From: Octopus bimaculoides | Lineage: Eukaryota | Length of the DNA stretch: 64,000 bases | NCBI RefSeq assembly: GCF_001194135.2 | Contig: NC_068988.1 | Location: 56,685,034-56,749,033 of the forward strand | Reading direction: 5' to 3' | Part shown: one piece after another, positions 6,159 to 63,994 of the stretch | How the letters are laid out: the number at the start of each line of letters is the position of its first letter | Numbering within the stretch: position 1 is the first letter of the stretch | Program-made: the position numbers and the translations under genes | The notes under the pieces: model-generated | The model's database searches: none | The model's input: only the letters and a program-made list of their open reading frames with translations | Told to the model about the DNA's origin: nothing

Positions 6159-8746
6159 TCTTAATTTGTTAATTATGAATAAGATAACAAAGAAATAGTA
6201 TTATTATTATTCTAAGACATTAATCCTTAGTAGCAGAACAAACTTTCTTTAAAAGAAAAAAAGAAAAGTTAGATTTATTCTAAGTTCAAAATTAACAACT
6301 CCAGTCTCAAAATTGTTATCTTTTTGAGAGTTGGAAATATTTTGAGCTGAATTCCCTCTTCTTGTGTTTGCAGCTCAAGCAGCGACACAGCTGTTACAGC
6401 CTCCAACACAACAACCTCAACCACAACTGGGTTCTCCACAACTACAAGTTGTGTCGTCCACCTCTGTGACATCATCTTCGCCCCCACCAACCGTTTCACC
6501 TAGTAGTAGTGAGGCATCAAGCACCACTTGCATTGTAAATACATTGTCATCACCAGCATCTCAGTCACAGATTCCAGTGGCATTGACTACTGATGTGATA
6601 TCTATTACTACTACTACTACTTCTACTACTACTACTACTACTACTCCGGCAACCCAGCCATCTGCACAGATCAGTTCTTTCCTACCCGGGATTTCTTCTT
6701 TCCCCAGTATGGAAATCGGTTCCACCCTCTTCGTTGAATGCTTTCCTGCTGCCACTATCTTTGCATGCTCTGCTTTTGATTATTATTTATCTTTTTTTTT
6801 TTTTTGGTTTCCTTTCTACCATCATTGTCTTGTGCTAACAGTTGATTTGCTAATTCACACTGTCAAGTACGTTCTAGATCTTCTAAATAATTATAGTAGG
6901 CAGCAGAAGTTATTTAACACATACATATATATTTCATAATCATTTATGAATGGTGCTAAGTAATAATTTCATTATTAGAATAATAATAATAAGTATAATA
7001 ATAATAATAATAATAACAACAATAATAATAATAATGATAACAATTTTTCTTTCTTAATTCTACTCCAATGCAAAAAAAAAAAGAAAAAAGAAAAAATATA
7101 ATTTGTCTTCTCTNNNNNNNNNNNNNNNNNNNNNNNNNNNNNNNNNNNNNNNNNNNNNNNNNNNNNNNNNNNNNNNNNNNNNNNNNNNNNNNNNNNNNNN
7201 NNNNNNNNNNNNNNNNNNNNNNNNNNNNNNNNNNNNNNNNNNNNNNNNNNNNNNNNNNNNNNNNNNNNNNNNNNNNNNNNNNNNNNNNNNNNNNNNNNNN
7301 NNNNNNNNNNNNNNNNNNNNNNNNNNNNNNNNNNNNNNNNNNNNNNNNNNNNNNNNNNNNNNNNNNNNNNNNNNNNNNNNNNNNNNNNNNNNNNNNNNNN
7401 NNNNNNNNNNNNNNNNNNNNNNNNNNNNNNNNNNNNNNNNNNNNNNNNNNNNNNNNNNNNNNNNNNNNNNNNNNNNNNNNNNNNNNNNNNNNNNNNNNNN
7501 NNNNNNNNNNNNNNNNNNNNNNNNNNNNNNNNNNNNNNNNNNNNNNNNNNNNNNNNNNNNNNNNNNNNNNNNNNNNNNNNNNNNNNNNNNNNNNNNNNNN
7601 NNNNNNNNNNNNNNNNNNNNNNNNNNNNNNNNNNNNNNNNNNNNNNNNNNNNNNNNNNNNNNNNNNNNNNNNNNNNNNNNNNNNNNNNNNNNNNNNNNNN
7701 NNNNNNNNNNNNNNNNNNNNNNNNNNNNNNNNNNNNNNNNNNNNNNNNNNNNNNNNNNNNNNNNNNNNNNNNNNNNNNNNNNNNNNNNNNNNNNNNNNNN
7801 NNNNNNNNNNNNNNNNNNNNNNNNNNNNNNNNNNNNNNNNNNNNNNNNNNNNNNNNNNNNNNNNNNNNNNNNNNNNNNNNNNNNNNNNNNNNNNNNNNNN
7901 NNNNNNNNNNNNNNNNNNNNNNNNNNNNNNNNNNNNNNNATATATATATATATATATATATATATAGATGTGCATGCATATATATACACACACACACACA
8001 CGTACATGCATATGCATACACACACGTCTGTGCATACACATAGTTACGATGGCTGCAACTCAGTTTTGTCATCCTGTGATTGTTCTCTTAAAGTCATATT
8101 GTACAGATGCAGTGGATGTTGTAATATTGTTTTGATGGACTGTCATAAAACATTTCAGTCTGTGTCTCAATGTACATCCTTTTCCGCACTCCCTGCAAAT
8201 AGAGATTCCATATAATGCATAGTTGACAACTTCCCTGTGTGTGGCCTCACTGATAAATTCTAAAGCCCTGCCTTACAGACACGCCCACATTAGTTACATG
8301 TTAAATTGGGCTGTTCACCAGTGAGCTGTTCCTGCTTGATAGAATTTTGTTTGAATTCCATTTGCCCATCATGCACAGTTTTCCTTTACAATGAATGATC
8401 CAGAGCAAATTTTCCTATACATTTTCCAAGAGTTATACATGCACACACACTCACTATGTTCACTTTTCCATGCACGCATGGATCAGATGGAATTTGTTAA
8501 GGCAGATTTTCTATAGTTGAATGCCCTTCCTGTCACCAACCCTCACCTGTTTTCTAGCAAGATATTTTCCCATTACCATAAACCACATTGCTTTTATGTT
8601 GATGCTTGTTTGCAACCACCACGTGATGTCAAGCTTTGTTTAGTTTTCTATCTACCAAATCCACTTACAAACATATGCATATATATACATACACACATGC
8701 TGATAAACATACATACCCACATTTATATGTATATATACACATACAG

Positions 8747-45230: not shown

Positions 45231-48200
45231 AATCTTGAGAAATATTTCTTAGATCTGCTGTTAAATCTAATCTCATCAGGAATTCCTTTGAACCACTGGT
45301 CCAAACATTCTTCTTGGAGATGGAAATACATTTGTCATCTTCATTTGAAATAAAAGCTGTCATGCCATAGAATTCCAAACTGCATTGGGTGATAAAACAA
45401 TTATTTTGATATGAGAGTACATGGGTAGGAGAGAAAGAAACAAAACAACTTTATTGTGAGATATGATTTATTTCTTATGCTTTTGGTCTTGTTTGAAACA
45501 ATTTATATTTTCCCTGCGTGGTAGAAAATACCAGCAAACGTGAAGGGGAAGGCAACAGTTGCCCTCTTCAATCTAGTGTCTTCCCATACTTGGCATGTGA
45601 TGAGGCTGGAAAATTATTCAGTTGGATTTGCAGGTCTTATTTCGGCAACATCTCTAAATCATAAATATGTCTACTGAAGCCCATTCTGATTTCTAGAGAA
45701 TTATTTGACAAATGTCTTTTGATAAAAAGTAAAAATAAAATAAAGCACCAGTTTTCAGGAAAATAAATTTGTCAATGTTTTATATTTTAAAGATGAAGCA
45801 CAGCTCCATTTTATTAAATAGAAGGGGGGGAAAAAAAAAGACAAAGGAATTATGGATGGATGACTTTTTAAATTCTTGCAGAGTTTAAATTCCTTTTATG
45901 AATGTAGGAAAAAAAACAAACAGAACAAACCATCATTGCGTGCCAATTATGAAAAAAAAAAAAAGGAAAATGAAATAAAAATATATCACATGGTGTGAAA
46001 CCCGAAAAGGTGCTTTTGTTATTTTCATGTCTAAAGTATGATACAAAAAAAAAAAAGTTAATGTTCTTAGTTTAAAACATGATTTAAACACATGACAAAA
46101 ATATATGTATAGATGAATGAAGAAAAATGATCTTCAAAAGATTTCTCTCTCAATTTGTCTGTCCAGCAAATTTAAACAAATGGACAGATACATAAATTAA
46201 ATCAGTTGAAGGAAATTTTTTTTTTTTTCTTTTTGGAGCATGTTTATTATAGAAACTAACTAACGCAACAGTGAAAGGTTGGACCAAGTGCAGAGGAAAG
46301 TACTGTGTGATCTTCCTTTCCTCTCTCTGTAAAATGGTTATTCAAATCTATTTGTACAGTTTCCAACATTTGAGCCATTTTTTTTTTTTAGAGGTAAGTC
46401 AAAGGAATGAGAAACATCATACAAAGTATGTTGGCTAGGTTAAAAAAAAAAAAAAAAATTTTTTTTTTTTCATTACTGTTAAACTCATGATGACAAATGT
46501 TAGAAATGGAATAACTGATGTAAAGAATTGTTGCTACTATTGTTTTCTTCTGACGTCTATGACTGGTAAGTTGTAGGAATAATAAATCCTAGAGATGAGA
46601 ATACAAGATTGTGAGGCCAAATCGAAAGAAGTATCTATATATAGAGAGCCAGTGAATTGAAATGATCATGGCCAAAACTGATTGGTGGAGGTATAATATT
46701 TGAAGTTACATGTTACTATAATAAAATGGAATTAATAGTACCTTATATATATATATAAAAAGGGAGCATAATTATAATTAACATTATGACATACAATTAC
46801 TAAATCCTTCGTTCAAGAATTTTTACTCTATATCTACTTTAGATTTCTGTTATAAAATTATAACGCAATCTCATCTACTTTAGATTTTTTTTATATATAT
46901 ATATATAAAATTATAAGCAATCTCAATATGCTACATATCAGCAGAAAAGTTTTTTTGTTTTTCATATTTATTACTTCCCTTTCCCATCTCCAGCAGCAGT
47001 CAAAGGACACGCTAGCAAAGAACTTGGAGACAAACAGTTTTATAGTGTGTTGAAGAACATGTGTGAAAGTATATATGACAAATGGCTGACAGCAAAACCA
47101 TTTAATTTGACTTGAGATACTGTGATAAACTCATTTAAAAAAATGCAAATATTGAAAGCAGCAGAAACACATTTAGAGAGCAATAGAAACAATGAAAGCA
47201 TGGTATTTTTTTCAAAAAAAAGAACCATGCATTTTACCAAATCCAACATGAGAACTAAAAAAAATATAAATAAATAAAAACAGATTTAATCTAGCAACAA
47301 CTGATATTAAAGAAAACGGAAAAAAAAAAGAGGTTTGTAGACAGCAAGTAAAAACCACTTTTTAAGTTCATTCTGTGTGTAGTTGTGAAAAATATTGCTT
47401 AAAGTTTTGAGGTAAAATATCTATTTGTTAATAAAAATATTGTTTCATATATATATATTATATATGATAATTAAAAATGGGGGAAGGGGAAAAAAAGCAA
47501 TCACCTAAATGTAGAAATTGGGTAGTTTTCAAATACCTTTGTANNNNNNNNNNNNNNNNNNNNNNNNNNNNNNNNNNNNNNNNNNNNNNNNNNNNNNNNN
47601 NNNNNNNNNNNNNNNNNNNNNNNNNNNNNNNNNNNNNNNNNNNNNNNNNNNNNNNNNNNNNNNNNNNNNNNNNNNNNNNNNNNNNNNNNNNNNNNNNNNN
47701 NNNNNNNNNNNNNNNNNNNNNNNNNNNNNNNNNNNNNNNNNNNNNNNNNNNNNNNNNNNNNNNNNNNNNNNNNNNNNNNNNNNNNNNNNNNNNNNNNNNN
47801 NNNNNNNNNNNNNNNNNNNNNNNNNNNNNNNNNNNNNNNNNNNNNNNNNNNNNNNNNNNNNNNNNNNNNNNNNNNNNNNNNNNNNNNNNNNNNNNNNNNN
47901 NNNNNNNNNNNNNNNNNNNNNNNNNNNNNNNNNNNNNNNNNNNNNNNNNNNNNNNNNNNNNNNNNNNNNNNNNNNNNNNNNNNNNNNNNNNNNNNNNNNN
48001 NNNNNNNNNNNNNNNNNNNNNNNNNNNNNNNNNNNNNNNNNNNNNNNNNNNNNNNNNNNNNNNNNNNNNNNNNNNNNNNNNNNNNNNNNNNNNNNNNNNN
48101 NNNNNNNNNNNNNNNNNNNNNNNNNNNNNNNNNNNNGGGAAAGGAAATGGTAATTGAAATATAAGAGATAACGAGGAGGAAACATAACAGAGAACCATGA

Positions 48201-49699
48201 AGTGAGTGATGATGGTATTGGTGAAGAACTAGTTTTTAGTACAAAGTTCAGGAGGTCTTTTAGGATTATCAAAGATGTAAAGAAAGCTAGGTAGCTTCTC
48301 TCTCTCTCTCTCTCTCTTTTGACTTCTGAGGTGTAGAAGTTTTAAATAAAGATGTGTACATTATTATTATTATTAATAATAATAATAAATCCTAACTACT
48401 TGTTGATGATGGAATTAAACAACAGCAGTTTTCAAAAAAAGGTGGTTTTTGTAGCACCAATTATGCAATGGTATTTATTAAGCTAACAGCAACCTGGACA
48501 GGCTTTTTAAAAAGATTTTTTTTTTTTTAAACCCATCCTGACTGCTGATCCACCAATAAAGTTGTTAATAGACTTCCTTTAGATAAATCATTTTTTTTTT
48601 TGTTGTTGTTGTTGTGGTAATGATTTTGATCTATATGATAATAAGACAGGCTATCAGTTGGTATCACGAGGCTGAAACAGATAAAGAAGAATGGAAAGTG
48701 AGAGATTTAAAACAAAAGAAAAATTATAACAAGCATCTATTAGCAGCAACACAAACCTATTTGCTCTTCAGATAGATAGATTGATAGATAGATACATACA
48801 CACATTATATATATACACACATACATATGTATTATTTTGTGTTATACTAAGAAGGGGTGCATGGTAACAAAATTTTCGACTCTTAGTCAAATATAACGAA
48901 GAACTCCAAATCATTGTTAGAATATCTGCATAAGTGGATTCTGGATCAGCTAGTTTGTACTGGCACTGAGTTGTACTAGTTGTAATAATGAAGTCAAACC
49001 AATTTTGATATTCTGAAATGTTTTAACTGAGGAAGATATGTAATGGATGCATTTACTGTTATACATTATGGAAACTTGAAACATACAGATTAAATGATTT
49101 CAAAATATCACTATCTGGCTTGAACTCATTACAACTCACATGACTTGATGCCAAGACAAACTAACTGGTCTAGAATCCACTTATATATATATATATATAC
49201 ATACGATGTATTTACTAGTGTGTTTTGCAACTAATTCAGTGTTAAATCTTGATACAAAATTTTTTTTCCCTTCATAGTTTTAGCCTTGCTCTGTGTACTT
49301 GTCACACTCCAGTTTTTTCAGTTGAAATTATGTATAAAATAGTGCAATACATACACAAATAAATGCAACATTTGTATGTGTGTGTATATCTATATCTCCT
49401 CTCTCTCTCTATATATATATATATGTGTGTGTGTATGTATGTATAATGTCTTTCCAAAGCACATTTCTACATCAAGCAATAAATAGACATCTATAAGAGA
49501 GCAAAATAAATAAAGAGAGAAATATGATCATGATGGTATACAGAGCAGGGATGGTAAAGGAAAAAAAAGTTAAAAGAAAGAAAAAAAATACAGTTTGCAA
49601 ACGAACATGCAGAAGATCTCCTCGTTTGTGGCAGGCAAAAGATATTAAAAGTAGAGATTAGATACAAAATACAATGAAATGATTAGCAAGGTTGGTTGA

Positions 49700-49750
49700 T
49701 TAACGAGTCCTCATCTTGGTAGAAAATAAACTCCCAGCGAAGTTTTGTTT
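49700..49750 (-). CDS. Candidate distal terminal exon of the GRK gene, KQNFAGSLFSTKMRTR*
   Basis: aatttcag| acceptor in phase 0 at the edge of a SINE-free, minus-strand-U-rich block (45430-49750). No homology support; weak pyrimidine tract. Confidence 0.3.
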   Translation of the reverse strand, partial: KQNFAGSLFSTKMRTR

Positions 49751-49870
49751 CTGAAATTTTTGCAAGTTATGCAATTTTATTTTTTACTTGTTTCAGTCAA
49801 TGGACCCTGCAGCCTTTCCGAGGCCCTGCCTTGACGGGTTTAGTTAAACAAATTGATCCCAGTACTCTGG

Positions 49871-50311
49871 TAGGATGGGTGCTGAAAAGTCCCTGGCTTT
49901 GGGTAAAAGAAAATACAGGAGGATCAGTTAATTACGATTTTATTCAACATATTCACCTCTCAGATTCACGCACTTATTGCAGTGGTCCTTCAGTTTTTCT
50001 AAGCCCTGTAAAAGAACTTGGAATGTTGGGCCTCTAACCAGACCTTTTGCGATACCCTTAAAGCCAGGAACTTTTCAGTAACCCCTCATGTGCGAATATA
50101 TATACACACACACATATATATAAGGGGGTGCTGAAAAGTTCCTGGCTTTTGGTAAAAGTATATACAAGAGGATCAGTTAATTATAATGTTATTGAACATA
50201 TTCCCCTCTCAGATTCACACACTTATTGCACTGTAAAAGAACTCAGAAGGCTGGGCCTCCAACCAGGCCTTTTGCTATATCCTTAAAGCCAGGAACTTTT
50301 TAGCACCCCCC
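49871..50311. mobile_element. Two tandem copies of the mariner-derived MITE inside an old SINE
   Basis: Same TIRs as 34699-34923. Minus strand keeps a transposase C-terminus, [27 protein letters not shown] sequence flanks at 49780-49870 and 50340-50400. Confidence 0.85.
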
Positions 50312-50997
50312 TTTCACTTATTTTATCATTCCTTTTATCAAACTGCTAAGTTACAGGAATGTAAACAAGCACCGGTTGTTTAGTAGTGGTGGGGACAAAC
50401 ATGAAGGGACATGACCAGGTGGTTGGGGTGTAGATGTTCATGATTGTGATTTCAATTCTCAGGTGAGGCAGTGTATTGTGTCCTTGAGTAAAATAATTCA
50501 TTTCATGCTTTTCTGCGATCACTGTGACATGTGACACATTGTGCTTCTGTACAGACGCTGTTGATTTGATGTAGTGAACAAACTAATGTGTGGCATGAAC
50601 ATCGTCTGTGCTGGTTGTTCAGCAAGAAATTGCGGAACCCTCATTTCTCATTTACGACAGGAGAGCCTTGGCTGTGTGGTAAGTTTGCTTCCCAACAACA
50701 TGGTTCTGGGTTCAGTCCCACTGTGTGGTACCTTGGGCAAGTGTCTTCTGCTATAGCTACAGGCTTGTGAGTTGATTTGGTAGATGGAAACTGAAAGAAG
50801 CCTGATGTGTGTGTGTATCTGTGCTTGTCCCCTACCACTGCTTGGCAACCAGTGTTGATGTGTTCATGTCCCTTGTAACTTAGTGGTTTGGCAAAAGATA
50901 TTGACAGAATAGGTACCAGGCTTAAAAAAATAAAAGTGCTGGAGTTGATTCATTTGACTAAAAATCCTTCAAGGTGGTGCCCCAGCATGGCCTCAGT

Positions 50998-51362
50998 CTA
51001 ATGACTGAAACAAGTAAAAGATAAAAGATATATAGTGTTGCTATCTCTAAGTGAAATAACATGTCTGTAGCCCCACATTGCCTGACAACCACTGTTGGTT
51101 TGTTGACATCCCTGCAAAAAAAAGACTGATATAATAAGTACCAGCCTTGGAAAAAAGAGAGTGCTAGAGTTGATTATTTTGACTAAAACCATCAAGATAG
51201 TGTTCCAGCATGGCCACAGTCCAATGGTCAAAAGAAGTAAAAGATAAAAAATACAGCATCATCAGTCTTGATGATCAGAGTTCAGTTATTTGATCAACTG
51301 AATTACTTGCTCCTTGAGTTAATCTCTAAGTGGCTGAGTACTCCACAGATACACAATCAATG
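50998..51362 (+). repeat. Local direct duplication, copy 1 (365 bp)
   Basis: Near-identical to 54162-54525, including junctions between unrelated SINE pieces. Confidence 0.9.
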
Positions 51363-52344
51363 TGTGTGTGCAATGGGTGTACCTTTAAATCACGGACAAT
51401 CCATTTGAGAGGTTTCTGCACAATTTCCCATCTGACCAACTTCACTCACAATGCTTGGTTGGATTGACTTGAAGCAATGATTAAAACTGAAGACACTTGT
51501 CTAAGGTGCCATGCAGTGGGGATGAACCTGGGACCTCAGGATTGCAAAGTGAACATCTTCAACATTCAGTTATGCTGTGTGCATCTTTCATGCGTAAACT
51601 GCTAATGATCAGTATCATTTAACGTCCATTTTCCATGCCGATATGAGTTAGATTGGTTTGACTGGAACTGGCAGGCCACAGTGTTGCACCAGGCTCCAGT
51701 TGTTTGTTTTGGCTTGGTTTCTATGGCTGGATGCCCTTCCTAACGCCAACTACCTTACAGTGTACTGGGTGCCTTTTACATGTCACTGTCATGGGTGCTT
51801 TTTATGTCACCAATGTTTAGTAAATTTTCAATATAATCAACATTTTAGAGGCATTTAGTAAAATGCCAGTAAATTTGGCAATTTATATGTGTGTGTGTGT
51901 ATATCTACTGATAAAATTGGTAGTGTCTGTCTATGTCTGTCATCTCTCTCTCTGATTCTCTGTCACTCTGACATCAGCAGCAATTAGCTGATATGTATGT
52001 ATAACATAAAAAACCCTAATGATCCGTTTAGTTAGCGGACCACAGAGTAGAGTTGGAGATATGTAACTTTAACTGCCAACATGTAAATTGTACATGTGTG
52101 AGAGAGAGAGAGAGAGAGAATGTGTGTATTGGTACCTGTTTATCTATCTATCTATCTATATACATCTGTATGTATGTATATCGTATTATTCTTTAAATAA
52201 TAAAGAGGAAGATTTATTTTACTCATTTAAACCCTTTCAATAAAGTTTACCACAAGCAGATGACTATAAAACTAAATATTTATTGAAATGTGGATTATCC
52301 AATAAATACCAACTAGCATGTGTGTATGTGTGTATGTGAATATA

Positions 52345-52749
52345 TATGTTGTATCTTGGGTGGGTCATTATGCCAATAATAAACACATTAACTGGTTCTA
52401 TTTCACTTCTGTCAATTGGTAAAAAATTTAGCCAATAAACTAATTGTTTGATTAATCATCTGACAAATCAATCATTTATGTTCGCTGAAGTCCTTTTGTT
52501 GCCATTCACAACCTATCTGAGATAGACCTGAAGTAGAGAGAGGGAGAGAGAGAGAGAGAGAGAGAGAGCATGCTATTGAAGAGGTCACAAATGGTGACAA
52601 AAGAACTGTAACAAACATAACTCATTGAGTAATTGAGTAACTGAACGATTAATTGTTAATTGTTTAGATAGTTAACAATTGATGAATAATAAAGAAGTGA
52701 ATTAGAACCAGTGTGTAAGTTTATTATTGGAATGATGATCCATCCAAGA
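52345..52749. mobile_element. Old fold-back element around a (GA)n core
   Basis: TCTTGGGTGGGTCATTATGCCAATAATAAAC..ACTGGTTCTATTTCACTTCT pairs with 52690-52749. A second arm pair lies at 52476-52515 and 52580-52620. Confidence 0.6.
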
Positions 52750-53247
52750 AAGCCCCCCCCCCCCCAAATGTTTCAACACACAAGTTCACCTCAAAAATCT
52801 TGCAAACCAAATATCGCATATNNNNNNNNNNNNNNNNNNNNNNNNNNNNNNNNNNNNNNNNNNNNNNNNNNNNNNNNNNNNNNNNNNNNNNNNNNNNNNN
52901 NNNNNNNNNNNNNNNNNNNNNNNNNNNNNNNNNNNNNNNNNNNNNNNNNNNNNNNNNNNNNNNNNNNNNNNNNNNNNNNNNNNNNNNNNNNNNNNNNNNN
53001 NNNNNNNNNNNNNNNNNNNNNNNNNNNNNNNNNNNNNNNNNNNNNNNNNNNNNNNNNNNNNNNNNNNNNNNNNNNNNNNNNNNNNNNNNNNNNNNNNNNN
53101 NNNNNNNNNNNNNNNNNNNNNNNNNNNNNNNNNNNNNNNNNNNNNNNNNNNNNNNNNNNNNNNNNNNNNNNNNNNNNNNNNNNNNNNNNNNNNNNNNNNN
53201 NNNNNNNNNNNNNNNNNNNNNNNNNNNNNNNNNTATGTATCTATATA

Positions 53248-53410
53248 TATATTGAGAAAAAAGAGGCAGTCAGAATTTTGGATAATCCTCTATTAGCGCT
53301 TTTGTTTGTTTATGAAATCATCAATACAAAATTAAGAGGAGTTCATAAACAAACGTTAGCGCTAATGAAAGATTATCCAAAATTCTGACTGCCTCTTTTT
53401 TCTCAATATA
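53248..53410. mobile_element. 163-bp hairpin MITE with perfect 40-bp terminal inverted repeats
   Basis: TATATTGAGAAAAAAGAGGCAGTCAGAATTTTGGATAATC is exactly reverse-complemented at 53371-53410. Inner arms ATTAGCGCT..TTTGTTTATGAA also pair. Confidence 0.85.
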
Positions 53411-53445
53411 CAATATCTCTACACCACTTCAAACACACACACACA

Positions 53446-53484
<39 letters not shown>

Positions 53485-53665
53485 GATAAGGAAAAATTCA
53501 ATTGTCACTAATTGTGACTGATGTTGAAGGGTAGCACATACATTGCTAGAAATAAGAGTTAAAAACCCTTAGAGCCAAAGAAGTATATGTCTATGCACTG
53601 ACAGGGGAGATAACTGCTCCACACCGACAGATCACCATACTAGTCATATCGTTTATATATTTCAC

Positions 53666-53717
<52 letters not shown>

Positions 53718-53870
53718 GTATATATAATGCTGATGTTGTCCAAATTTGGTATTATCAGCTGTAAACTTATATTATTTCCATGAGATTTTCTAGACAAGTA
53801 GTTGTTATTTATTTTGAGACAAATAAAAATTTTCTATAAATCTTTAACATTAAAAGATAGCAGATTTTAT

Positions 53871-54130
53871 ATGGCTGGGCACTCTGTCAGTTATGATGAC
53901 AAGGGTTCCAGCTGATCCGATCAATGGAACAGCCTGTTCATGAAGTTAACATGCAAGTGACTGAGCGCTCCACAGACACATGTACCCTTAAAGTAGGTCT
54001 CAGGGTGATTCAGCATGACGGGGCTGGCTCACTGAACTACAAACTAAAAACTAAATTTTGCCAGATGAGTGAACTGGAGCAATGTGAACTAAAATGCTTT
54101 GCTTTATTCCATCGGGAATTGAACTCCTGA
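53871..54130 (+). mobile_element. SINE fragment with GGGTTCCAGCTGATCCGATCAATGGAACAGCC domain
   Basis: Degenerate relatives at about 51270-51360 and 54430-54520. Resembles a cephalopod SINE central domain as I recall it; unverified. Confidence 0.55.
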
Positions 54131-54161
54131 CCTTATGATTATGAGCTAAATACACAAACTA

Positions 54162-54525
54162 CTAATGACTGAAACAAGTAAAAGATAAAAGATATATAGT
54201 GTTGCTATCTCTAAGTGAAATAACATGTGTGTGACTCCACATTGCCTGACAACCAATGTTGGTTTGTTGACATCCCTGCAAAAAAAGACTGATAGAATAA
54301 GTACCAGCCTTGGAAAAAAGAGAGTGCTAGAGTTGATTATTTTGACTAAAACCATCAAGACAGTGTTCCAGCATGGCCACAGTCCAATGGTCAAAAGAAG
54401 TAAAAGATAAAAAATAGACCATCATCAGTCTTGATGATCAAGGTTCAGTTATTTGATCAACTGAATTACTTGCCTCTTGAGTTAACCTCTAAGTGGCTGA
54501 GTACTCCACAGATACACAATCAATG
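54162..54525 (+). repeat. Local direct duplication, copy 2 (364 bp)
   Basis: Near-identical to 50998-51362. Confidence 0.9.
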
Positions 54526-55999
54526 CCTCCAGTTATGTAATACAACATAAACAGTGAAATAAATAAATATCTTGTTTTGTTCACTACCATCCTGCACTAA
54601 TCACTGGCCAGTTTATCCCTCCTAGTGCTTCATTCCTCTGGAATGCTTATGTCCATCTTTTCCCCTGCGACATTGACTTATTGAGGTTCAAAAGGGGACA
54701 CTAATAGCAACAGTCTTATTGGTCTAGAAGGGCCTATGAAGGCAAAGAAGCAATGCCCCATTCTCCGGAGACACACCAAAAGAAAAATGGAAAAAAGCCC
54801 CCCCCCCCACCGCAAAAATAAAGACCGACTGAATTTGTGAAAAGTGTTGGAGGCAGGGGGAGGGAGCTAGGGGGTGAAGATCCACTGTAATAAAGGAAGG
54901 GGGAACCCCCCCCCCCCCAAAAAAAAAAACTATTGTCCGTCTTGTGTCCATCTGAGAAAGAAATTCAAGCCAAAATTTAAATATTTATATTTTATTCTCA
55001 AAAACTTCAAAAATCAATAATGAAATCGCAAAAAAAACAAAAAAACAAAACAAAAAAAACAATAATAATAAAAAAAGAAAAGAAAAAAGTATAATTAAAG
55101 AAATGAGACATAAAGTAAAAAAAATATATCCTGTGATTAAAAAAACAACAAAAACAACCCGTGTTCAGATCTTCCAGGTTTTTACATGAAATTGTGTGTG
55201 TGTGTGTGTATGTATGTGTGTCTGTATATGTATATATATATGTATATATAAATATATACACACACTATATATATACATACATATATATGTATGTGCGTAT
55301 GTATATATATATATATATATATATGCACGCACACACAAAAACAACATATAAGAAAATATTTAAAAACAAACAAAAATGTTTGATAATTTGGACACTGCAT
55401 AAAACTCATACTTAATGCAACATTTTTTTTTTTTGTTTTAGTAAATGGGGGATAAAGAAACATTTAAAAATTGAATAGTTCTAGTCAGAAATGGTTGCAA
55501 TCTTGGAAGATTATACAAATGGCCAACTGCTAATCTAAGGACATTGTCCAACTAGAATGGTAAATTTCTTACTAAAAAGTCCAAAATCTAATAATGTTGA
55601 AGCCAGGGTGGGCAACTTGATTACACTGACCCCTAGTACTTGTCTGGGATTCCAAAAGGATGAAAGGCGAAGTTGACCTTGATGGAATTTGAACTCAGAA
55701 TGTTAGGAGTCAGAAGAAATACCACTAACAATTTTGTCCAATGCTCTAATGATTCTGCCAGCTAGAGTGATTCTACCTTAGTTAGAGTGATAAATTAAAG
55801 GCTTCAATCACACTCAAGGTTATTGCCTGTGTGGCCCCTATAGTTACTGTTTAGTCTGTAGTTCATCGTTGGTGGAATAGACACTACAATTAAGACTGTT
55901 CCTGATGTGACCATCCCATTATATTTTGTTATCATCTAGTTAACCTAGTGCAATGATTCTCAACCATGGTCCATATGGCCCTTGGGGGTCCTTAAAAAC

Positions 56000-56318
56000 C
56001 AGGGGTTCTCAACCAATTTTTATCAATGGACCTCTTTGATTACTATTTTCTCTGGTGGACCCCCATCACCATTTCATATTTAAAAGCTAGTTTTATAGAT
56101 ACTTCGAAATTCCTGTTTTTTCTCACATTAACTTGTGTAGGTTGAACTTTGTAAAATGTTGGAGAAAGAAACTGAGCTGTTTCTTGAAATAAATACAAAT
56201 AGAATTTAAAGCAAAATTCTTTCTGGGACCCTGAAAATACTATCATGGATCCCCAATTTACTATTTTGTTGCATGGACCCCCAAAAAATCTTATATGGAC
56301 CCCAGCTGAGAACCACTG
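56000..56318. mobile_element. hAT/Charlie-like MITE, probably nested in a related element (about 55950-56515)
   Basis: CAGGGGTTCTCAACC...CTGAGAACCACTG termini with internal GGACCCC repeats; TSD not clear. Confidence 0.55.
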
Positions 56319-56533
56319 TCATTAAATTTTGTTAAAATTTATATGCTATAAATTGGTTAAACTTCTATAATACACCAAATATTTTTTTTATCCAATTCCT
56401 GATGTTATCTCATAATGAAAATATAATAGAATGTTTTAAACCTTGAACAGTTACAGGGGCCCATCCATATAAAACAGGAATCAAAGAGGTCCAAAGGCAA
56501 AAAATACACTGATGTAGTGTATTTATTATTTAA

Positions 56534-56738
56534 CCCTTTGGCATCCAGATTACCCTGCCAAATGTAATGTTTGTTTATTCACATTCTTTTGAAATGACCA
56601 TGTATTAGCCTGCAGCCTTGAGATTTTGATTATGTTTACTTTTAGAATGATATTGTAAGGTAGGTGTGAGAGGCCATATCCGGCTGGTTTGAACATAAGA
56701 CAATTAAAATATCTGGGCTGGATAAAATACTTAAAGAG
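56534..56738. mobile_element. piggyBac-type MITE (TTAA flanks)
   Basis: TTAA|CCCTTTGGCATCCAGATTACC...AAAGAG|TTAA. Confidence 0.65.
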
Positions 56739-58135
56739 TTAAGACAGTAGGGTTAATTGTGAGAGATTTGGCTGCTATTTCTACCAAATTAAGCAACCTT
56801 GTAGAGGCACATGGCTGTGTTTAGTATGTATGTATGTATGTACGTACGTCTTTATATGCATGTGGGTATGCATGAGATGCTAAATTTTGAAAATATATAG
56901 CTACATGTAAGTCTGCATTCATTTACAGCCTGTGATTTGTGGTCATCCTGGGGCAGAATCACAAAAATGAAGCTGCTTACAGCAGCCAGATTTCACAATG
57001 GCCCACCTGAGTATCAGAAGAGGCTCAACATTGCATAACTTTGGATATTAATTCTACCTATATGCCAAACATCCATTGGTTCCTCAGCACCTGATGGAGT
57101 TGCAGAGGCACCATGACAAACAGCATGTCATCGGTAATTTTAAACCTGACCGAGGTCAACCCTCTCCCAGGGTGGTGACAGCCAATTTGTTCCGGAGAGA
57201 GAAAGAGAGGTAGAAAAGAATCAACTGGCAATACATTTTTCAACCTTAAGGTGGTGAGCTGGCAGAATCCTTAGCATGCTGGGCAAAATGCTTAGTGACA
57301 TTTTGTCCTTTAAGTTCTGAGTTCAAATTCCACCAATGCCAATTTTACTTTTCATCCTTTCTGAGTCAAAAAATAAGTTCCAGTTAAGCACTGAAGTCTA
57401 ACACCCTACTCTCAAAACTCCTGGCCTTGTGCCAAAATTTGAAATCATTATTATTAACGTTGTTATTATTAGAAAGGTAGTGTAAGGTGGCGAGCTGGCA
57501 GAATCATTAACACACTGGGTAAATTGCTTAGCAGCATTTCGTCTGTCTTTACGTTCTGAGTTCAAATTCTGCCACAGTCAACTTTGCCTTTTGTTTTTTT
57601 AAGGGTCGATAAAATAAGTACCAGTTGAATGCTGGGGTTGATGTAATTGACTTACCCGGACTCCTGAAATTGCTGGCCTTGTGCCAAAATTTGAAACCAA
57701 TATATTTATCAAACTTGAAAGGATGAAAGGCAAAGTTGGCTGAGACAGGATTTGCACTCTGAGAGTAAGAGAGCTGGAATGATTACTGCAATTCACTTGA
57801 TGCCATAATGACNNNNNNNNNNNNNNNNNNNNNNNNNNNNNNNNNNNNNNNNNNNNNNNNNNNNNNNNNNNNNNNNNNNNNNNNNNNNNNNNNNNNNNNN
57901 NNNNNNNNNNNNNNNNNNNNNNNNNNNCATGCTACTATGCATTGTTGGACAGGAGCTGTTTGAGACAGTGTTTTAGCATTAGATGCCACCCACTCTTATC
58001 ACCAACCTTCACCTGTTTTCCAAATAAGGATTTTTGTTTTTCTACAGGTCTTTGAAACGGACTGGCTGTAATTAATAACATTCTAACATATACATGCAAG
58101 CATGCACACACACACACACACACACACACACTCAT

Positions 58136-58172
<37 letters not shown>

Positions 58173-58529
58173 TATAGTATAGAATAGTGGCTGCTTTCTT
58201 ATATACGAGAAAAGCCATCGCTAGAAAGAATGACAGAAACGAGTTATTGATAAAGCAATGTGAAGCCCTTATATGAATATAAGATAGCTTCCACACAGTT
58301 TTTGCCTACCAATACCACTTACAACACATTGACTGGTCTTGGACCTAAGTAGAAAATATTCGCCCATGGTGCTGTACACTGAGACTGAACACCAAACCAT
58401 GTGATTACGAAGTAAACTTCTTAACCACACATCCATATCTGCACCTATTATATACATTCATCTTTTTCTGCTCACCTTTCTTTGAAAAGGTCACAGGGAT
58501 AGAGTTCTCAGGCACCTCTCTATTTAGTT

Positions 58530-58835
58530 CTACAAGAAGCAGCTGTCATAACACTTTTCAGCTGGATGCTTAGCATGACCAACTGCTACGATGGATATTA
58601 TCCAACCATCTCATTCTTGACCTACCACTAAGTCTCCTGCTGGTTGGTTCAATTTGAAGAACCTGTCTTGTGATTGTTTTCTGTGACATAGTACCAGAGC
58701 TGTGACTGCTCAATGTTGAGAAGTAGTGGGTTGACCGCAGAGACTTCTTGATCTCTGAATGTTGCACCCTGTCGAGTAACGTTACTCCAGAGGTCCTTTG
58801 GAGGAATCCTATTTCAATTGCTTGTATTTGCAAAC
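58530..58835 (-). mobile_element. Rex3/Expander-type LINE 3' relic
   Basis: EIGFLQRTSGVTLLDRVQHSEIKKSL...RQVLQIEPTSRRLSGRSRMRWLDNIHRSSWSC; homologous to 21040-21350. Confidence 0.8.
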
Positions 58836-58852
58836 AAACTTTTCGTTCTATA

Positions 58853-59190
58853 TGGCTTAGTGGTTAAGGTGTTCCACTCATGATTGCGAGATCATGGGTT
58901 TGATTCCCGGACCAGGCATTGTGTTCTTGAGCAAAGCACTTCATTTCATGTTGTTCTGCAATCATTTCGACATCTGACATGTGGCACCTGTTGCACCTGT
59001 ACAGGTAATATCAATCTGATGGAGAGCGTCAGCTTATGTCTACACAAACATTTGATCACTATAAACAAATCATCTGTGTGGTTGTTCGGTAAGAAATTGT
59101 CGAACCCTCATACGTCGTCAAACAACAGGAGAGTCCATTATATGTGTGTGTGTGTGTGTATGATGACGGACTCTCCCATTGAAGATGGTG
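58853..59190 (+). mobile_element. tRNA-derived SINE family E
   Basis: Head TGGCTTAGTGGTTAAGG (A box) and GGGTTTGATTCCCGG (B box). Related copies at about 21515-21730 and 60560-60850. Confidence 0.75.
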
Positions 59191-59774
59191 TATAAGCGTT
59201 CAGCTTTTTTGACATCATTCAGTAAGAAGGCAAGAAAATATGTGGGGGAAAAAAAAATCTGGGACCTTGGAAGTTCATGCAAAGACCTGTAGATTAATAA
59301 ATCCCTAATTTGGAAAATAAACTAGTAAGGGTCAGTGCTAGGAATGGCATTTGGCCATAAGACACTGCCTCAACAAGCCTCATTTGACCCATGCCAGCAT
59401 GGAAAAAGCATATGGGATGATGATAATGATGATGATTATACACACGCACACATATACATATGTATAAAGATAACAAAATTTTGGAAAAAACACAAAATAA
59501 AAGACAAACAAAACAATGAAAAAAAATACAACACAAACTGTGCAGTAATAACAGTAGTGGTAGTAGTAGTGGTAGTGGTAGTAATGGCAGAAATATAAAT
59601 GCAAAATATTTCAAGAACAAGATTTCATAGGAATGGAAGTTAGCAAAGAAATTAAATAAAAAAACCAACAACAAAAGACAACAAAGAAAAACAATTTATT
59701 CCATTCTTAGGAAAATGGAAATGGTGAGCTGCCCCACCCCCAGTCATCTGACAAGTGTCTTTACAAGCGTATGA

Positions 59775-59824
<50 letters not shown>

Positions 59825-59920
59825 AAAAGGGAAATAAACAAAGCTTCCAACAATGCAGGAAGTTTTTCCAGGTGTAAAGGCCCATCCTCAGAAGGAAGGG
59901 GTCCAAGAAATATTTAGTTA

Positions 59921-60213
59921 CATTGATTTTGTTACTTTATTTTAAACTGCTTGGCATTTGGGATAGCAGCAACTCTCCAAAGGTTGGTCGTTGTGACGTA
60001 TTTTCGTGCAGTGGTGGTGGAAGATGGTGCTGGTGGGATATGTTATAACAGGTTGGTCACAGTTGTCATGACATATGCCATCAACACCACCACCACCACC
60101 ACCACCACCACCACCATGTGAAAATATAACAAAACGACCAACAGTTGGAGAGTCGCTGCTGCTGTTGCTATCCCAAATACCAAGCAGTTTAAAATAAAAT
60201 AACGAAATTGATG
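59921..60213. repeat. Long inverted repeat / fold-back
   Basis: 59931-59992 pairs with 60133-60203, and GGT-rich 60000-60042 pairs with ACC-rich 60071-60125. Confidence 0.85.
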
Positions 60214-61712
60214 GAAATAGACATTTTTGGGGGGACTGCTTCCTTCTGAAGATAGAACTTTGCACTTGAAATATACAAGCTTTTGTAAAAACTTTCTGTA
60301 CTGTAGGAAGCTTTCTTATTTCCTTTGTCTTTCATTTTCCGCTTCAGTACTTCAAGAGACACACATGTGTATACGTACATACATATATGAGAGTAAATGT
60401 TAAACTACAATGAGCATATAATGTATATGCATGTGAATGTGAGTGTAGGAGAAAGAGAGAGAGATTTAAAGAGTCTCAATGAAAATTCTTGCAGACTTAT
60501 AATCAATGACATGTCAGTCATAAGTATCCATTCATATTTTCAGACATATTGTGTCTAATGTGCATTGGGCTGACAATCATGAGATAGTGAGTTCAATTCC
60601 TGGACTGAGCTCTGTGTTGTGTTCTTGAGCAAGACACTTTATTTCATGCTATTCTAGTTCATTAGGCTGCAGAAATGAGTTGTGACATCACTGGTGCCAA
60701 ACTGTATTGGTCTTTTTTGGCCATTCCCTTGGATAACATTGGTGGCATGGAGATGGGAAGCTTGTATGCATGGGCAACAACTTTGCCTGGACTTGTGTCT
60801 TAAAGGGTAACTTTCTAGCTGCAATCCCATGGTCATCCATGACTGAAGGGGGTCTCTCTCTCTCTCTTTCCCCATATAAATATATTATTAATATGTTCAC
60901 TATTTACAACAGTAGTTTAAGGGACATTTGGTTATTCTGTCTAGCAGTTTGAGCAATCATACAGAGGTTTTCTCCACACAGACTGGAATAACAGGCCAGC
61001 AAATATGCGACATGGAGCAGTTGAATATATTGACTCCAAATAATAATAATAATAATAATAATAACAATAATAATAATGGTTTCAAATTTTGGCACAAGAT
61101 CAGCAATTTCAGGAGAGGGGGCAGGGGGGGGAAGTCATTTACATCAACCCCAGAATTCAATTGGTATTTATTTTATCGCNNNNNNNNNNNNNNNNNNNNN
61201 NCGAAAGGATGAAAGGCAAAGCCGTCTTCAGCAGTATTGAAATGCAGAATGTGAAGACAGATGAACTGCTGCAAAGCATTTCGCTTGGCGTGCTGAAGAT
61301 TGTCCCAGCTTGCCATTTTAATAATAATCCTTTGTACTATAGGCACAAAGCCCGAAATTTGGGTGGGGAAGGGATTAAGTCAATTACATCGATCCCAATA
61401 ACTAGTACTTATTTAATCGACCCAGAAAGGATGAAAGGCAAAGTGGACCTTGGTGGAATTTGAACTCTGAACATAAGGACGGACAAAATGCCACTAAGCA
61501 TTTTGCCTGGTGTGCTAACGATTCTGCCAGCTCACCGCCTTAGTAAATAATGATGATGATGATGATGATGATGATGATATTTCTAATTTAGGCACAAGGC
61601 CAGCAATATTGTGCACTTGACTGGTACTTTATCGACTCTGACAGGATGAAAGACAGAGGTGAGGTTGATGAGATTTAAACGCAGAATGTAAAGAGCTGGA
61701 AATAAATGTCCT

Positions 61713-62146
61713 AGGCATAGACATGGCTGTGTGACTGAGAAGTTTGCCTCCCAACCACATGGTTCCGGGTTCAGTTCCACTGAGTGATACCTTGGGCAAG
61801 TGTCTTCTACTATAGTCCCAAAGCCTTGTGAGTGGATTTGGTAGAAAGAAACTGAAAGAAGCCCACCATGTGTGTGTGTGAGTAAGTATGAGTGTGTTTG
61901 TTTGTGCCTCCTTGTCTTGATAGCTGTAAATGAGTGTCACTGGCATACAAGCAGTGTCATTGATTTTCAATATTCTGGGAAAATATGTCTGGTCATGGGG
62001 GAAGTATTGCCTTGCTTGGTAACTGGTGAGGGTTGGTGACATGAAGGGCATCTGGCCGTAGAAAAAAAATCTGCCTCGATATAAACTTCCGTTTGACCCA
62101 TGCAACTATGGAAAAAGTGGACCTTAGAACAATGATGATGATGATG
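61713..62146 (+). mobile_element. Full-length SINE with family-B head and core but a different 3' tail
   Basis: Head and core as in 10421-10816, then GGTGAGGGTTGGTGACATGAAGGGCATC...CCCATGCAACTATGGAAAAAGTGGAC and (GAT)n. Reverse copies at 4055-4452, 8460-8680 and 41273-41660. Confidence 0.82.
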
Positions 62147-62236
62147 AAGATGGCAATGATAATGACGATTTTTCTCTAATGCACTAATGATTCAGCCCAT
62201 CCAACACCCGTAACGATAAGGGTTTATGGGGGTAAG

Positions 62237-62277
<41 letters not shown>

Positions 62278-62699
62278 CAGCGAGATGAAGACAGATGCAT
62301 TTTTGTGCAGTGACTGCAACAGGCATTCTATGCATGCACTATGGTCTTACCTGCTCCTACCGGTATGTCATGCCTTTTTAAGAGTGGTCAAAATGGTGGT
62401 GGTGGAGAGCAGGTTGAACCCTGGACACCGTGTATTGTAATTACAACTAATTAACTAGTCTACATAGATAATTGTTGCTGTTGTATAGATTCCTCCTCCC
62501 CCCCATTCACCTCCCTCCCTCTCTTTGGTCAGGTCGGGTTGAGTTTGACCCTGCAGAACCTGCAGTGTGTTTGTGGGCTGACGCGTGTTATGTGTGGATG
62601 GTTGGTTCCATTAAATAAATGCTTGGGTTGTAATGTTGGATTGCTTTGATTAACATATAGGAGACAAAAAAAAAAAAAAAAAAAAAAAACTAAACAAAA

Positions 62700-62803
62700 A
62701 ATAAAGTTAAAGTATAAGAGAGGGAGTGATGTGTGTGAGAGAGGGAGGGAGTGTGTGTCTTTGAGGGAGAGTATGTATGAGTAAGAGGAGTGCATGAAAA
62801 GGA

Positions 62804-62841
<38 letters not shown>

Positions 62842-63180
62842 GTGTATGTGCAAGAGAGAGAGGAAGAAATGAAAGAGAAGTGATTTGTGTAAAAGAGAGA
62901 GGTTGGAGAAAAAGAGTGTATGTAAAAGTGAGAGAGAGAGAGTGTGTGAGTAAGAGTGGTTGCATGTGAGAGAGAAAATGAAAGAGAAAGAGAGAGCATG
63001 TGTGTGTGTGTGTATGTAAAAGAGAGGCAGAAGGAGAGATAGTTTGTGTGTGTGTGAGAGAGAGAGAGAGAGTGACAGAATGATAGACAGACAGAAGAGA
63101 GTATAAGTGTGAGAGAGAAAGAAAGTGTACATGTGTGAGAGAGAAAAGAAAGTGTGTGTGTGTGTGTGAGAAAGAATAGA
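62700..63180. repeat. GA/GT-rich low-complexity tract
   Basis: Purine-rich on plus, CT/CA-rich on the GRK sense strand. Confidence 0.8.
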
Positions 63181-63271
63181 GCACCGAGGATATAAGCAAC
63201 GTTGTGACCATCGTTCTTCAGAGCGTCTGTATAAGTGGCATCCGATTATCGAACGTGCGGTGGTGCAGCGG

Positions 63272-63343
63272 TCAGACATCGGTGGAGGTTTCACCGCTAT
63301 GACTGGAACAGATCTTGAAGAAGTCAGTACAACTGCTACTTAC
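63272..63343 (-). CDS. GRK read-through C-terminal tail [23 protein letters not shown]
   Basis: Frame stays open through the GTAAGT donor to TGA at 63274-63272. The sequence is CpG-rich, unlike the intronic DNA elsewhere. Confidence 0.5.
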
Positions 63344-63478
63344 CCGCCTACGACGCAAGATTCGATCTAGTAAGCCAGGTCTGGGAGGCGGAGGTGGCTG
63401 GTCCTCCAGTAGGTCCGGTGAGGGGGTAAAGTTTTCACCGAACACATTCAATTCTTTAAAACATTCTGTCTCAATCAT
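63344..63478 (-). CDS. Late exon of a GRK4/5/6-subfamily G protein-coupled receptor kinase (Gprk2-like)
   Basis: (T)n-gcag|ATG; [45 protein letters not shown]|gtaagt, 135 nt. Resembles the recalled GRK5 segment [44 protein letters not shown]. The rest of the gene lies beyond 64000. Confidence 0.93.
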
Positions 63479-63589
63479 CTGCAAAAAAAAAAAAAAAAAA
63501 AAATTACACCAATTTATGTATTTTTATATAAAATCTTATTGATCCCTCTTTCATATATATACGTATTAATCAAAGTGTACAATATCATA

Positions 63590-63994
63590 TATGGCTGTTC
63601 GTACACATGCGTCATACAGTCTGCCTTTTACTCTGAGTGAGAGGCCCCTTGTTATCAGCAGAGGTAAGAGCTCTCTGAACTTTGCCCAGGCTATTCCTAT
63701 TCTAGCAGCTACACTTTCAGCGCACCCTCCCCCACTACTAACTTGGTCACCTAGATAGCGGAAGCTATCAACTACGTCTAGTTTTTCTCCCTGGAATGTG
63801 GCAGAAGTTGTTTTCTGCACATTCACAGTGTTTATAGCTCCTGAACAGGTTACATACAAAAACTAACTTCTTAGTTAACCTTCCTTTGATATTGCTGCAC
63901 CTCTTATGTGTCCAAAGCTTGCACTTGGTGCATCTTATAGAGTTTCTGCCTACGCCTTTTCTACAGATCAAGCAGGGCCATCTACCTGAAGGGA
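63590..63994 (-). mobile_element. RTE LINE fragment (Cys/His finger and post-RT region) in a GRK intron
   Basis: PSGRWPCLICRKGVGRNSIRCTKCKLWTHKRCSNIKGRL, a frameshift, then [54 protein letters not shown]. Confidence 0.9.

Follow-up and report, generated by a model that had tools for sequence, protein, structure and literature searches.

At one end of the window, by which we mean the whole stretch of 64,000 nucleotides of octopus DNA analysed, a kinase exon closes with a consensus donor directly behind an amphipathic helix, and its reading frame stays open on the intron side of that donor. Two questions are raised by this arrangement: (i) is the donor used in every transcript, or do some mRNAs read on into the intron and (ii) what would the second C-terminus mean for the kinase, if it is made. 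The answers depend on what the exon is, on where its boundaries lie and on which RNAs leave it, and these points are taken in turn.

The locus covers the 3′ end of a minus-strand cephalopod kinase gene of the GRK4/5/6 type (GRKa). A preliminary description of this DNA had proposed a kinase exon of this type, and the proposal is borne out by homology: in a phmmer search against the PDB, the exon peptide matches residues 514–560 of human GRK5 (E 1.2e-13) and also GRK6 (E 8e-11), with the 11-residue amphipathic-helix stretch of the octopus exon aligned with GLLQRLFKRQH. The exon is the penultimate coding exon of the gene and spans positions 63344..63478 (minus strand; 135 nt, 45 codons, phase 0). 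It starts with MIETECF and holds the basic amphipathic membrane-binding helix. Pfam returned no family match for the exon plus the tail that may follow it, the peptide being too short. The two C-termini described below end 5 or 23 residues past the helix, so there is no C-terminal PH domain of the GRK2/3 kind, and neither of their endings (-RDTN and -STDV) is a CaaX prenylation box as in GRK1/7.

Both boundaries of the exon are set by RNA contigs and reads. The upstream intron closes with a 3′ splice site at 63479..63500 (minus strand), in which an 18-nt T-run plus GC is followed by the AG at 63480-63479 (tttttttgcAG/ATGATT). All 31 X24 reads and every Logan contig that reaches 63478 continue from there into ...GGCAGTGTTTCAATACCCTGGCAAAATGAA. 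This sequence encodes GSVSIPWQNE, the 10 residues with which the preceding exon ends, as read from RNA loose ends; it matches GRK5, and its source exon lies outside the 64-kb window. The RNA shows zero branching at 63478 and the upstream intron is missing from it: of the words of 63150-63560, the RNA runs contain ~0.78, a share that leaves out the upstream-intron part alone. The frame given in the preliminary description needs correction at this point: the Q that it placed before MIETECF is intron sequence, and the residues that really precede the exon are ...GSVSIPWQNE. RNA editing or other sequence differences of at least 3% were found in neither the exon nor the tail in the 12 organism-A RNA runs.

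Two further stretches of the window deserve mention as observations in their own right. The intron upstream of the GRK exon carries, at 63566-63971 on the minus strand, pieces of ORF from a highly repeated element, for which RNA contig depths lie at 10^3-10^4. One of these pieces gives a weak PHD-finger match (PF00628) at E 4.4e-5, slightly below the cutoff. The other (..RYLGDQVSSGGGCAESVAARIGIAWAKFRELLPLL..), for which there was no Pfam match, looks to us like the C-terminal portion of an ORF from a non-LTR retrotransposon. At 6364-6939 on the plus strand, there is an open frame of 191 aa with a high content of Ser, Thr, Pro and Gln, perhaps an exon from the coding sequence of an adjacent gene; its sole Pfam match is insignificant.

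The downstream boundary of the exon is the 5′ splice site GTAAGT (63338..63343, minus strand; GT at 63343-63342) in the context CGG/GTAAGTAGC. The minus-strand reading thus confirms the consensus donor that had been reported directly after the amphipathic motif. It is used in one form of the mRNA and bypassed in another, and the contig branch point falls exactly at 63344 in X1, X2, X3, X5, X7 and X8. RNA contigs and reads that stop at 63344 continue with CCTCGTGATACCAACTGATAGCCTGTCTTA, and the loose-end consensus matches the window once, at 48671 on the minus strand with 0 mismatches; the acceptor ctgtttcAG/ stands directly before this position. The last intron of the spliced form extends over 48672..63343 (minus strand; 14,672 nt, GT...AG), and the coding part of the terminal exon occupies 48654..48671 (minus strand), reading CCT CGT GAT ACC AAC TGA, or PRDTN and a stop. 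A terminal exon of 5 codons is easily missed by ab initio gene models, and this one is identified here.

The 3′ UTR of the canonical form, 48140..48653 (minus strand), is covered by X3 RNA contigs at depths of 34-41 and by X24 reads at ~12-23. It continues into an assembly gap (47544-48136), which hides the UTR end; the window has twelve such gaps (N runs), this one being inside the canonical GRK 3′ UTR. Words of the canonical terminal exon are 90-100% present in eleven RNA runs. In X11, 0/49 sampled words of that exon were present and the depth is 0 in its non-repetitive stretches. X11 contigs are nevertheless found at 48770-49287 (depth 4.5-10), in intronic sequence just upstream of the canonical terminal exon despite the zero coverage there; these contigs may be a separate transcript or a repeat.

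When the donor is bypassed, the frame continues for 23 codons (63275..63343, minus strand) to a TGA stop at 63272..63274. The extension has Cys at +5 and +12 after RRRR, both sitting within ~15 residues downstream of the amphipathic helix, and its C-terminal -S-T-D-V-COOH fits, as a motif, the class I PDZ-ligand pattern x-[S/T]-x-hydrophobic. Translation therefore agrees with the earlier statements that the frame is open for 23 codons past the donor and that the tail ends in the PDZ-type motif -STDV.

Evidence for such read-through in RNA comes from public runs, which include 12 organism-A RNA libraries; the depths given here are mean k-mer depths of Logan contigs, complemented by raw reads for X24. 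Contigs run unbroken from the exon across the donor to ~63045 in all 12 organism-A RNA runs examined, and microsatellites halt assembly there. These read-through contigs (832-2004 nt) cover 63045 through 63478 and go on into the upstream exon. In the unbranched cases, one and the same contig crosses the donor and extends 5′ into spliced upstream exons. Because the read-through contigs are spliced upstream, they represent processed RNA rather than DNA. A single low-depth read-through contig of identical sequence was also found in organism B.

The balance between the two forms differs widely among libraries. Depths of the exon, the spliced form and the read-through form were 45.3, 28.6 and 5.2 in X2; 107, 93.9 and 16.2 in X7; 71, 38.7 and 16 in X8; 23.3, 12.5 and 5.6 in X1; 64.6, 34.3 and 23.8 in X3; and 16.2, 4.6 and 8.8 in X5, respectively. 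In X14, with an exon depth of 38, the contig runs through the splice and the read-through depth is 3. X4, X6 and X11 yielded no spliced contig, and the read-through depth equals that of the exon (46.1, 17.4 and 13.8, respectively). The read-through share thus ranges from ~8% (X14) to ~100%, and read-through is the sole assembled form in X4, X6 and X11 among the 12 libraries, where the only form is to be read as the dominant form since Logan contigs lose rare branches. Two real mRNA forms exist, and their ratio varies strongly by sample. The preliminary description had suggested examining RNA over 63344 for a switch between donor use and read-through; both spliced and continuous RNA are found there in library-dependent proportions, so that the switch stands as regards the RNA forms and their varying balance, and its consequence for the protein is hypothetical.

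Where the read-through transcript ends can be approached from coverage. X4 has a depth of 46.1 over 63045-63478 and of 0 over the unique stretch 62370-62593, and in X5, X6, X7, X8 and X3 coverage goes down by at least half across the same span. X7 and X3 retain a depth of 3-4 close to the intron 3′ end, and X24 ~0. Retention of the whole intron does not fit the fall in X4 from 46 to 0 by 62593 and the low depth at the intron 3′ end. Together, these data point to a main read-through RNA that ends ~0.3-0.75 kb past the stop codon, most likely no further than the T-run at 62705-62666. The coverage drop falls on a CT/CA microsatellite with a long T-run behind it; the remainder of the read-through 3′ UTR (62600..63171, minus strand) is CT/CA microsatellite-rich and, judged by the drop, contains the 3′ end. 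AATAAA and ATTAAA are absent from the minus strand between 63343 and 61417, the first one lying 1.9 kb downstream of the donor, and no poly(A)-tailed reads were seen at the read-through 3′ end. Some coverage persists deeper into the intron in X6, X5, X8 and X11, so a share of the read-through signal may come from intron that is retained or nascent.

An X8 RNA contig over 60130-60638 shows five T>C differences from the genome at 60190-60316, within 130 nt, which read as A>G in the sense of the gene (minus strand). A-to-I hyper-editing of the intronic transcript could account for this cluster, as could a paralogous repeat copy.

The start of the read-through 3′ UTR has a composition of its own. 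The sequence had been described as CpG-rich beyond the stop, and 63172..63271 (minus strand) has indeed a GC content of 0.50 and 9 CpG, with an o/e of 1.50, compared with 0.82 in the exon, 0.53 in the coding part of the tail (2 CpG) and a window mean of 0.30. RNA contigs that carry the exon carry this block too, and 63172-63343 is single-copy in the window. Constraint, hypomethylation or young sequence are possible explanations for the kept CpGs. A structured RNA in the block was considered and rejected: there is no Rfam match for 63172-63271, and the fold z-score of -1.41 (15/200 shuffles fold equally well) is not significant. We also note that in the minimum-free-energy fold of 63182-63343 (minus strand) the 5′ splice site region GUAAGUAGCAGUUGU pairs with ACAACGUUGCUUAU (63195-63182), ~140 nt downstream. 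Such a pairing, if it forms as modelled, could mask the donor.

The read-through RNA could be real and still be a functionless by-product, left by inefficient removal of a long intron or by premature termination in a repeat-rich one; the tail would then be a chance reading, and any regulation would come about through the smaller amount of canonical mRNA. We consider this account rather unlikely, and it has to be weighed with care because several features of the tail agree with it. Of the mock GTRAG donors in the window, 30% are followed by 23 or more open codons, as is the case in 40% of local shuffles; with a chance expectation of 30-40%, the length of the open frame is by itself unremarkable. 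The first residues of the tail, VSS, are merely a reading of the donor consensus GTAAGTAGC. The ending of the tail is harder to obtain by chance, a C-terminal [ST]-x-[VIL] of the class I PDZ type arising in just 2.6% of mock tails.

Comparison with other genomes also agrees with a chance reading. The comparator is one distant cephalopod-like locus (L001/L002, ENA assembly), where 41/45 exon residues are identical to those of octopus and 22 codons carry synonymous changes; so many synonymous changes in the shared exon imply deep divergence. The donor is identical (CGG/GTAAGTAGC), but similarity stops at the donor consensus and the read-through frame gives VSSSLFT followed by a stop. The comparator has its own micro-exon, ttttccAG/CAT CGA GAA ACC AAC TGA (HRETN and a stop), 4.26 kb downstream of the orthologous exon. 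Since the micro-exon has been kept across this deep divergence (HRETN in the comparator versus PRDTN in octopus), the canonical micro-exon is old and constrained, whereas the tail is not conserved. The conservation of the tail frame and of -STDV, put forward in the preliminary description as a check, therefore does not extend to this one distant cephalopod, which has neither tail nor motif. On these alignments, the 23-residue tail would be lineage-specific at best.

Nor does the tail have homologues in the protein libraries searched. A phmmer search with the 33-aa helix plus tail against 1.84 billion representatives gave no match. What a word-indexed search brought up was limited to short ORF fragments of other invertebrates, in which the frame crosses this ancient donor and the tails are all different. 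As for closer octopods, matches among DNA runs in the run index occur in organism A only; in organism C, only 43 nt of the exon are found, and looking for exact copies of the 68- and 70-aa ORFs gave no result. The failure to find a canonical poly(A) signal, noted above, and the low coverage deeper in the intron in several runs would likewise fit a by-product.

Set against this, read-through is the dominant or sole assembled form in 3/12 libraries, at depths of 14-46 and with the upstream introns fully spliced, which is hard to dismiss as noise. The stop codon of the read-through form lies in the last intron and has no exon junction downstream, so that classical nonsense-mediated decay would be unexpected, and the stretch that follows the stop is unusually CpG-rich and unique. 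The other explanation, that the signal past the donor is an artefact of genomic DNA contamination, nascent pre-mRNA or mis-assembly through repeats, is largely refuted and very improbable: most run types are guessed (‘RNA?’), Logan contigs lack strand and read-level information and the flanks are repeat-rich, but the donor-crossing contigs are spliced at the upstream acceptor, the DNA-like run X15 passes that acceptor unspliced and so shows what DNA or contamination looks like here, the true RNA-seq reads of X24 give a depth of ~5-7 past the donor against ~30-36 in the exon with 31/31 upstream-acceptor reads spliced, the segment 63172-63343 is present once in the window, and read-through ratios of 15-100% far exceed what transcription time relative to mRNA lifetime would lead one to expect of nascent RNA from a 14.7-kb intron.

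We favor a different reading, in which the penultimate exon would act as a composite terminal exon; leaving tail acylation and PDZ binding aside, we regard its RNA parts as probable. When the donor at 63343 is used, the exon is joined to the micro-coding last exon 14.7 kb downstream, giving a kinase that stops just past the basic amphipathic helix (...LRRRR-PRDTN). When the donor is bypassed, the transcript would end within the intron a few hundred bases on, and the kinase would bear the 23-residue tail. The choice between the two forms is sample-dependent. We infer that splicing competes with intronic 3′-end formation and that the read-through mRNA is translated.

The textbook case of a composite terminal exon with intronic polyadenylation is the pair of secreted and membrane mRNAs of immunoglobulin mu. 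In that type of switch, a 5′ splice site is opposed by nearby intronic 3′-end formation in a cell-type-dependent manner, and the outcome swaps both the C-terminus and the membrane targeting of the protein; the octopus locus is likened to it with a 3′ end seen from coverage only.

Closer parallels exist within the kinase family. Alternative C-termini are known in the GRK4 subfamily. For a cephalopod GRK4/5/6-type kinase, C-terminal isoforms are described by none of the papers in the library searched, the work found there being on the GRK2-like ‘rhodopsin kinase’. The vertebrate parallel drawn in the preliminary description holds. GRK6A, GRK6B and GRK6C (576, 589 and 560 aa) part ways at this position of the protein, palmitoylation being confined to GRK6A (PMC9784940), and NHERF1 is bound by the -TRL ending of GRK6A, a class I PDZ ligand (PMC8042174). 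These variants belong to the same subfamily as the octopus kinase and diverge at approximately the same point, just past the amphipathic helix. GRK6C, at 560 aa, ends almost immediately, like the octopus form with PRDTN. In GRK6A, residues 553-576 read QRLFSRQ/D... (tail QRLFSRQ-DCCGNCS..PTRL), placing the palmitoylated cysteines (C561, C562 and C565) behind the helix and after Q559, to be compared with the Cys at +5 and +12 in octopus. The layout of the two tails is alike, but their sequences have no similarity, and they arise differently, the octopus tail by reading on into the intron and those of GRK6 by choice among downstream exon segments. Because the distant cephalopod lacks the octopus tail, the octopus and GRK6 tails are at most convergent and not homologous.

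The endings of the two tails can be compared in the same manner. Both -TRL of GRK6A and -TDV of octopus are isoform-specific C-termini of the GRK4 subfamily that conform to [S/T]-x-hydrophobic; PDZ binding has been shown by experiment for GRK6A, whereas the octopus tail is known from its motif. Endings of the form -[ES]TDV are typical of PSD-95/Dlg ligands, such as Kv1.4, and the likely partner of the octopus tail would therefore differ from that of GRK6A. A third point of comparison is human GRK4, whose exon 15 (46 codons) is alternatively skipped in GRK4 gamma and delta (PMC5015388). The 45-codon octopus exon matches this exon in position and size, but GRK4 skips its exon, whereas the octopus exon is always included and what follows it varies. 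The likeness of the two exons suggests that regulated processing at this end of the gene recurs in the subfamily.

For the function of the tail we can offer speculation by analogy. The two Cys beside the membrane helix might be palmitoylated, like the tails of GRK4 and GRK6A, and -TDV might bind a class I PDZ scaffold, as the ending of vertebrate GRK6A does. A bolder extension would be that an octopod lineage has made the first 69 nt of the last intron coding, so that a GRK6A-like, palmitoylatable and PDZ-binding tail evolved independently of vertebrates, is switched on near-completely in certain tissues or stages and directs the kinase to PDZ scaffolds such as synaptic complexes of the Dlg/PSD-95 type. 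Taken as a whole, this extension is doubtful in our view. If it were true, kinase isoforms would have evolved convergently in a nervous system whose origin is separate from that of vertebrates.

The extreme C-termini of GRK4-subfamily kinases place these enzymes at membranes and scaffolds, and vertebrates diversify this end by alternative splicing. For annotation, the GRK gene gains a second valid stop codon and a second 3′ UTR. The cephalopod gene may have turned intron sequence into a Cys-containing tail with a GRK6A-like PDZ-ligand ending, and a switch of its C-terminus, near-complete in some samples, would provide a testable handle on tissue-specific GPCR desensitisation in octopus.
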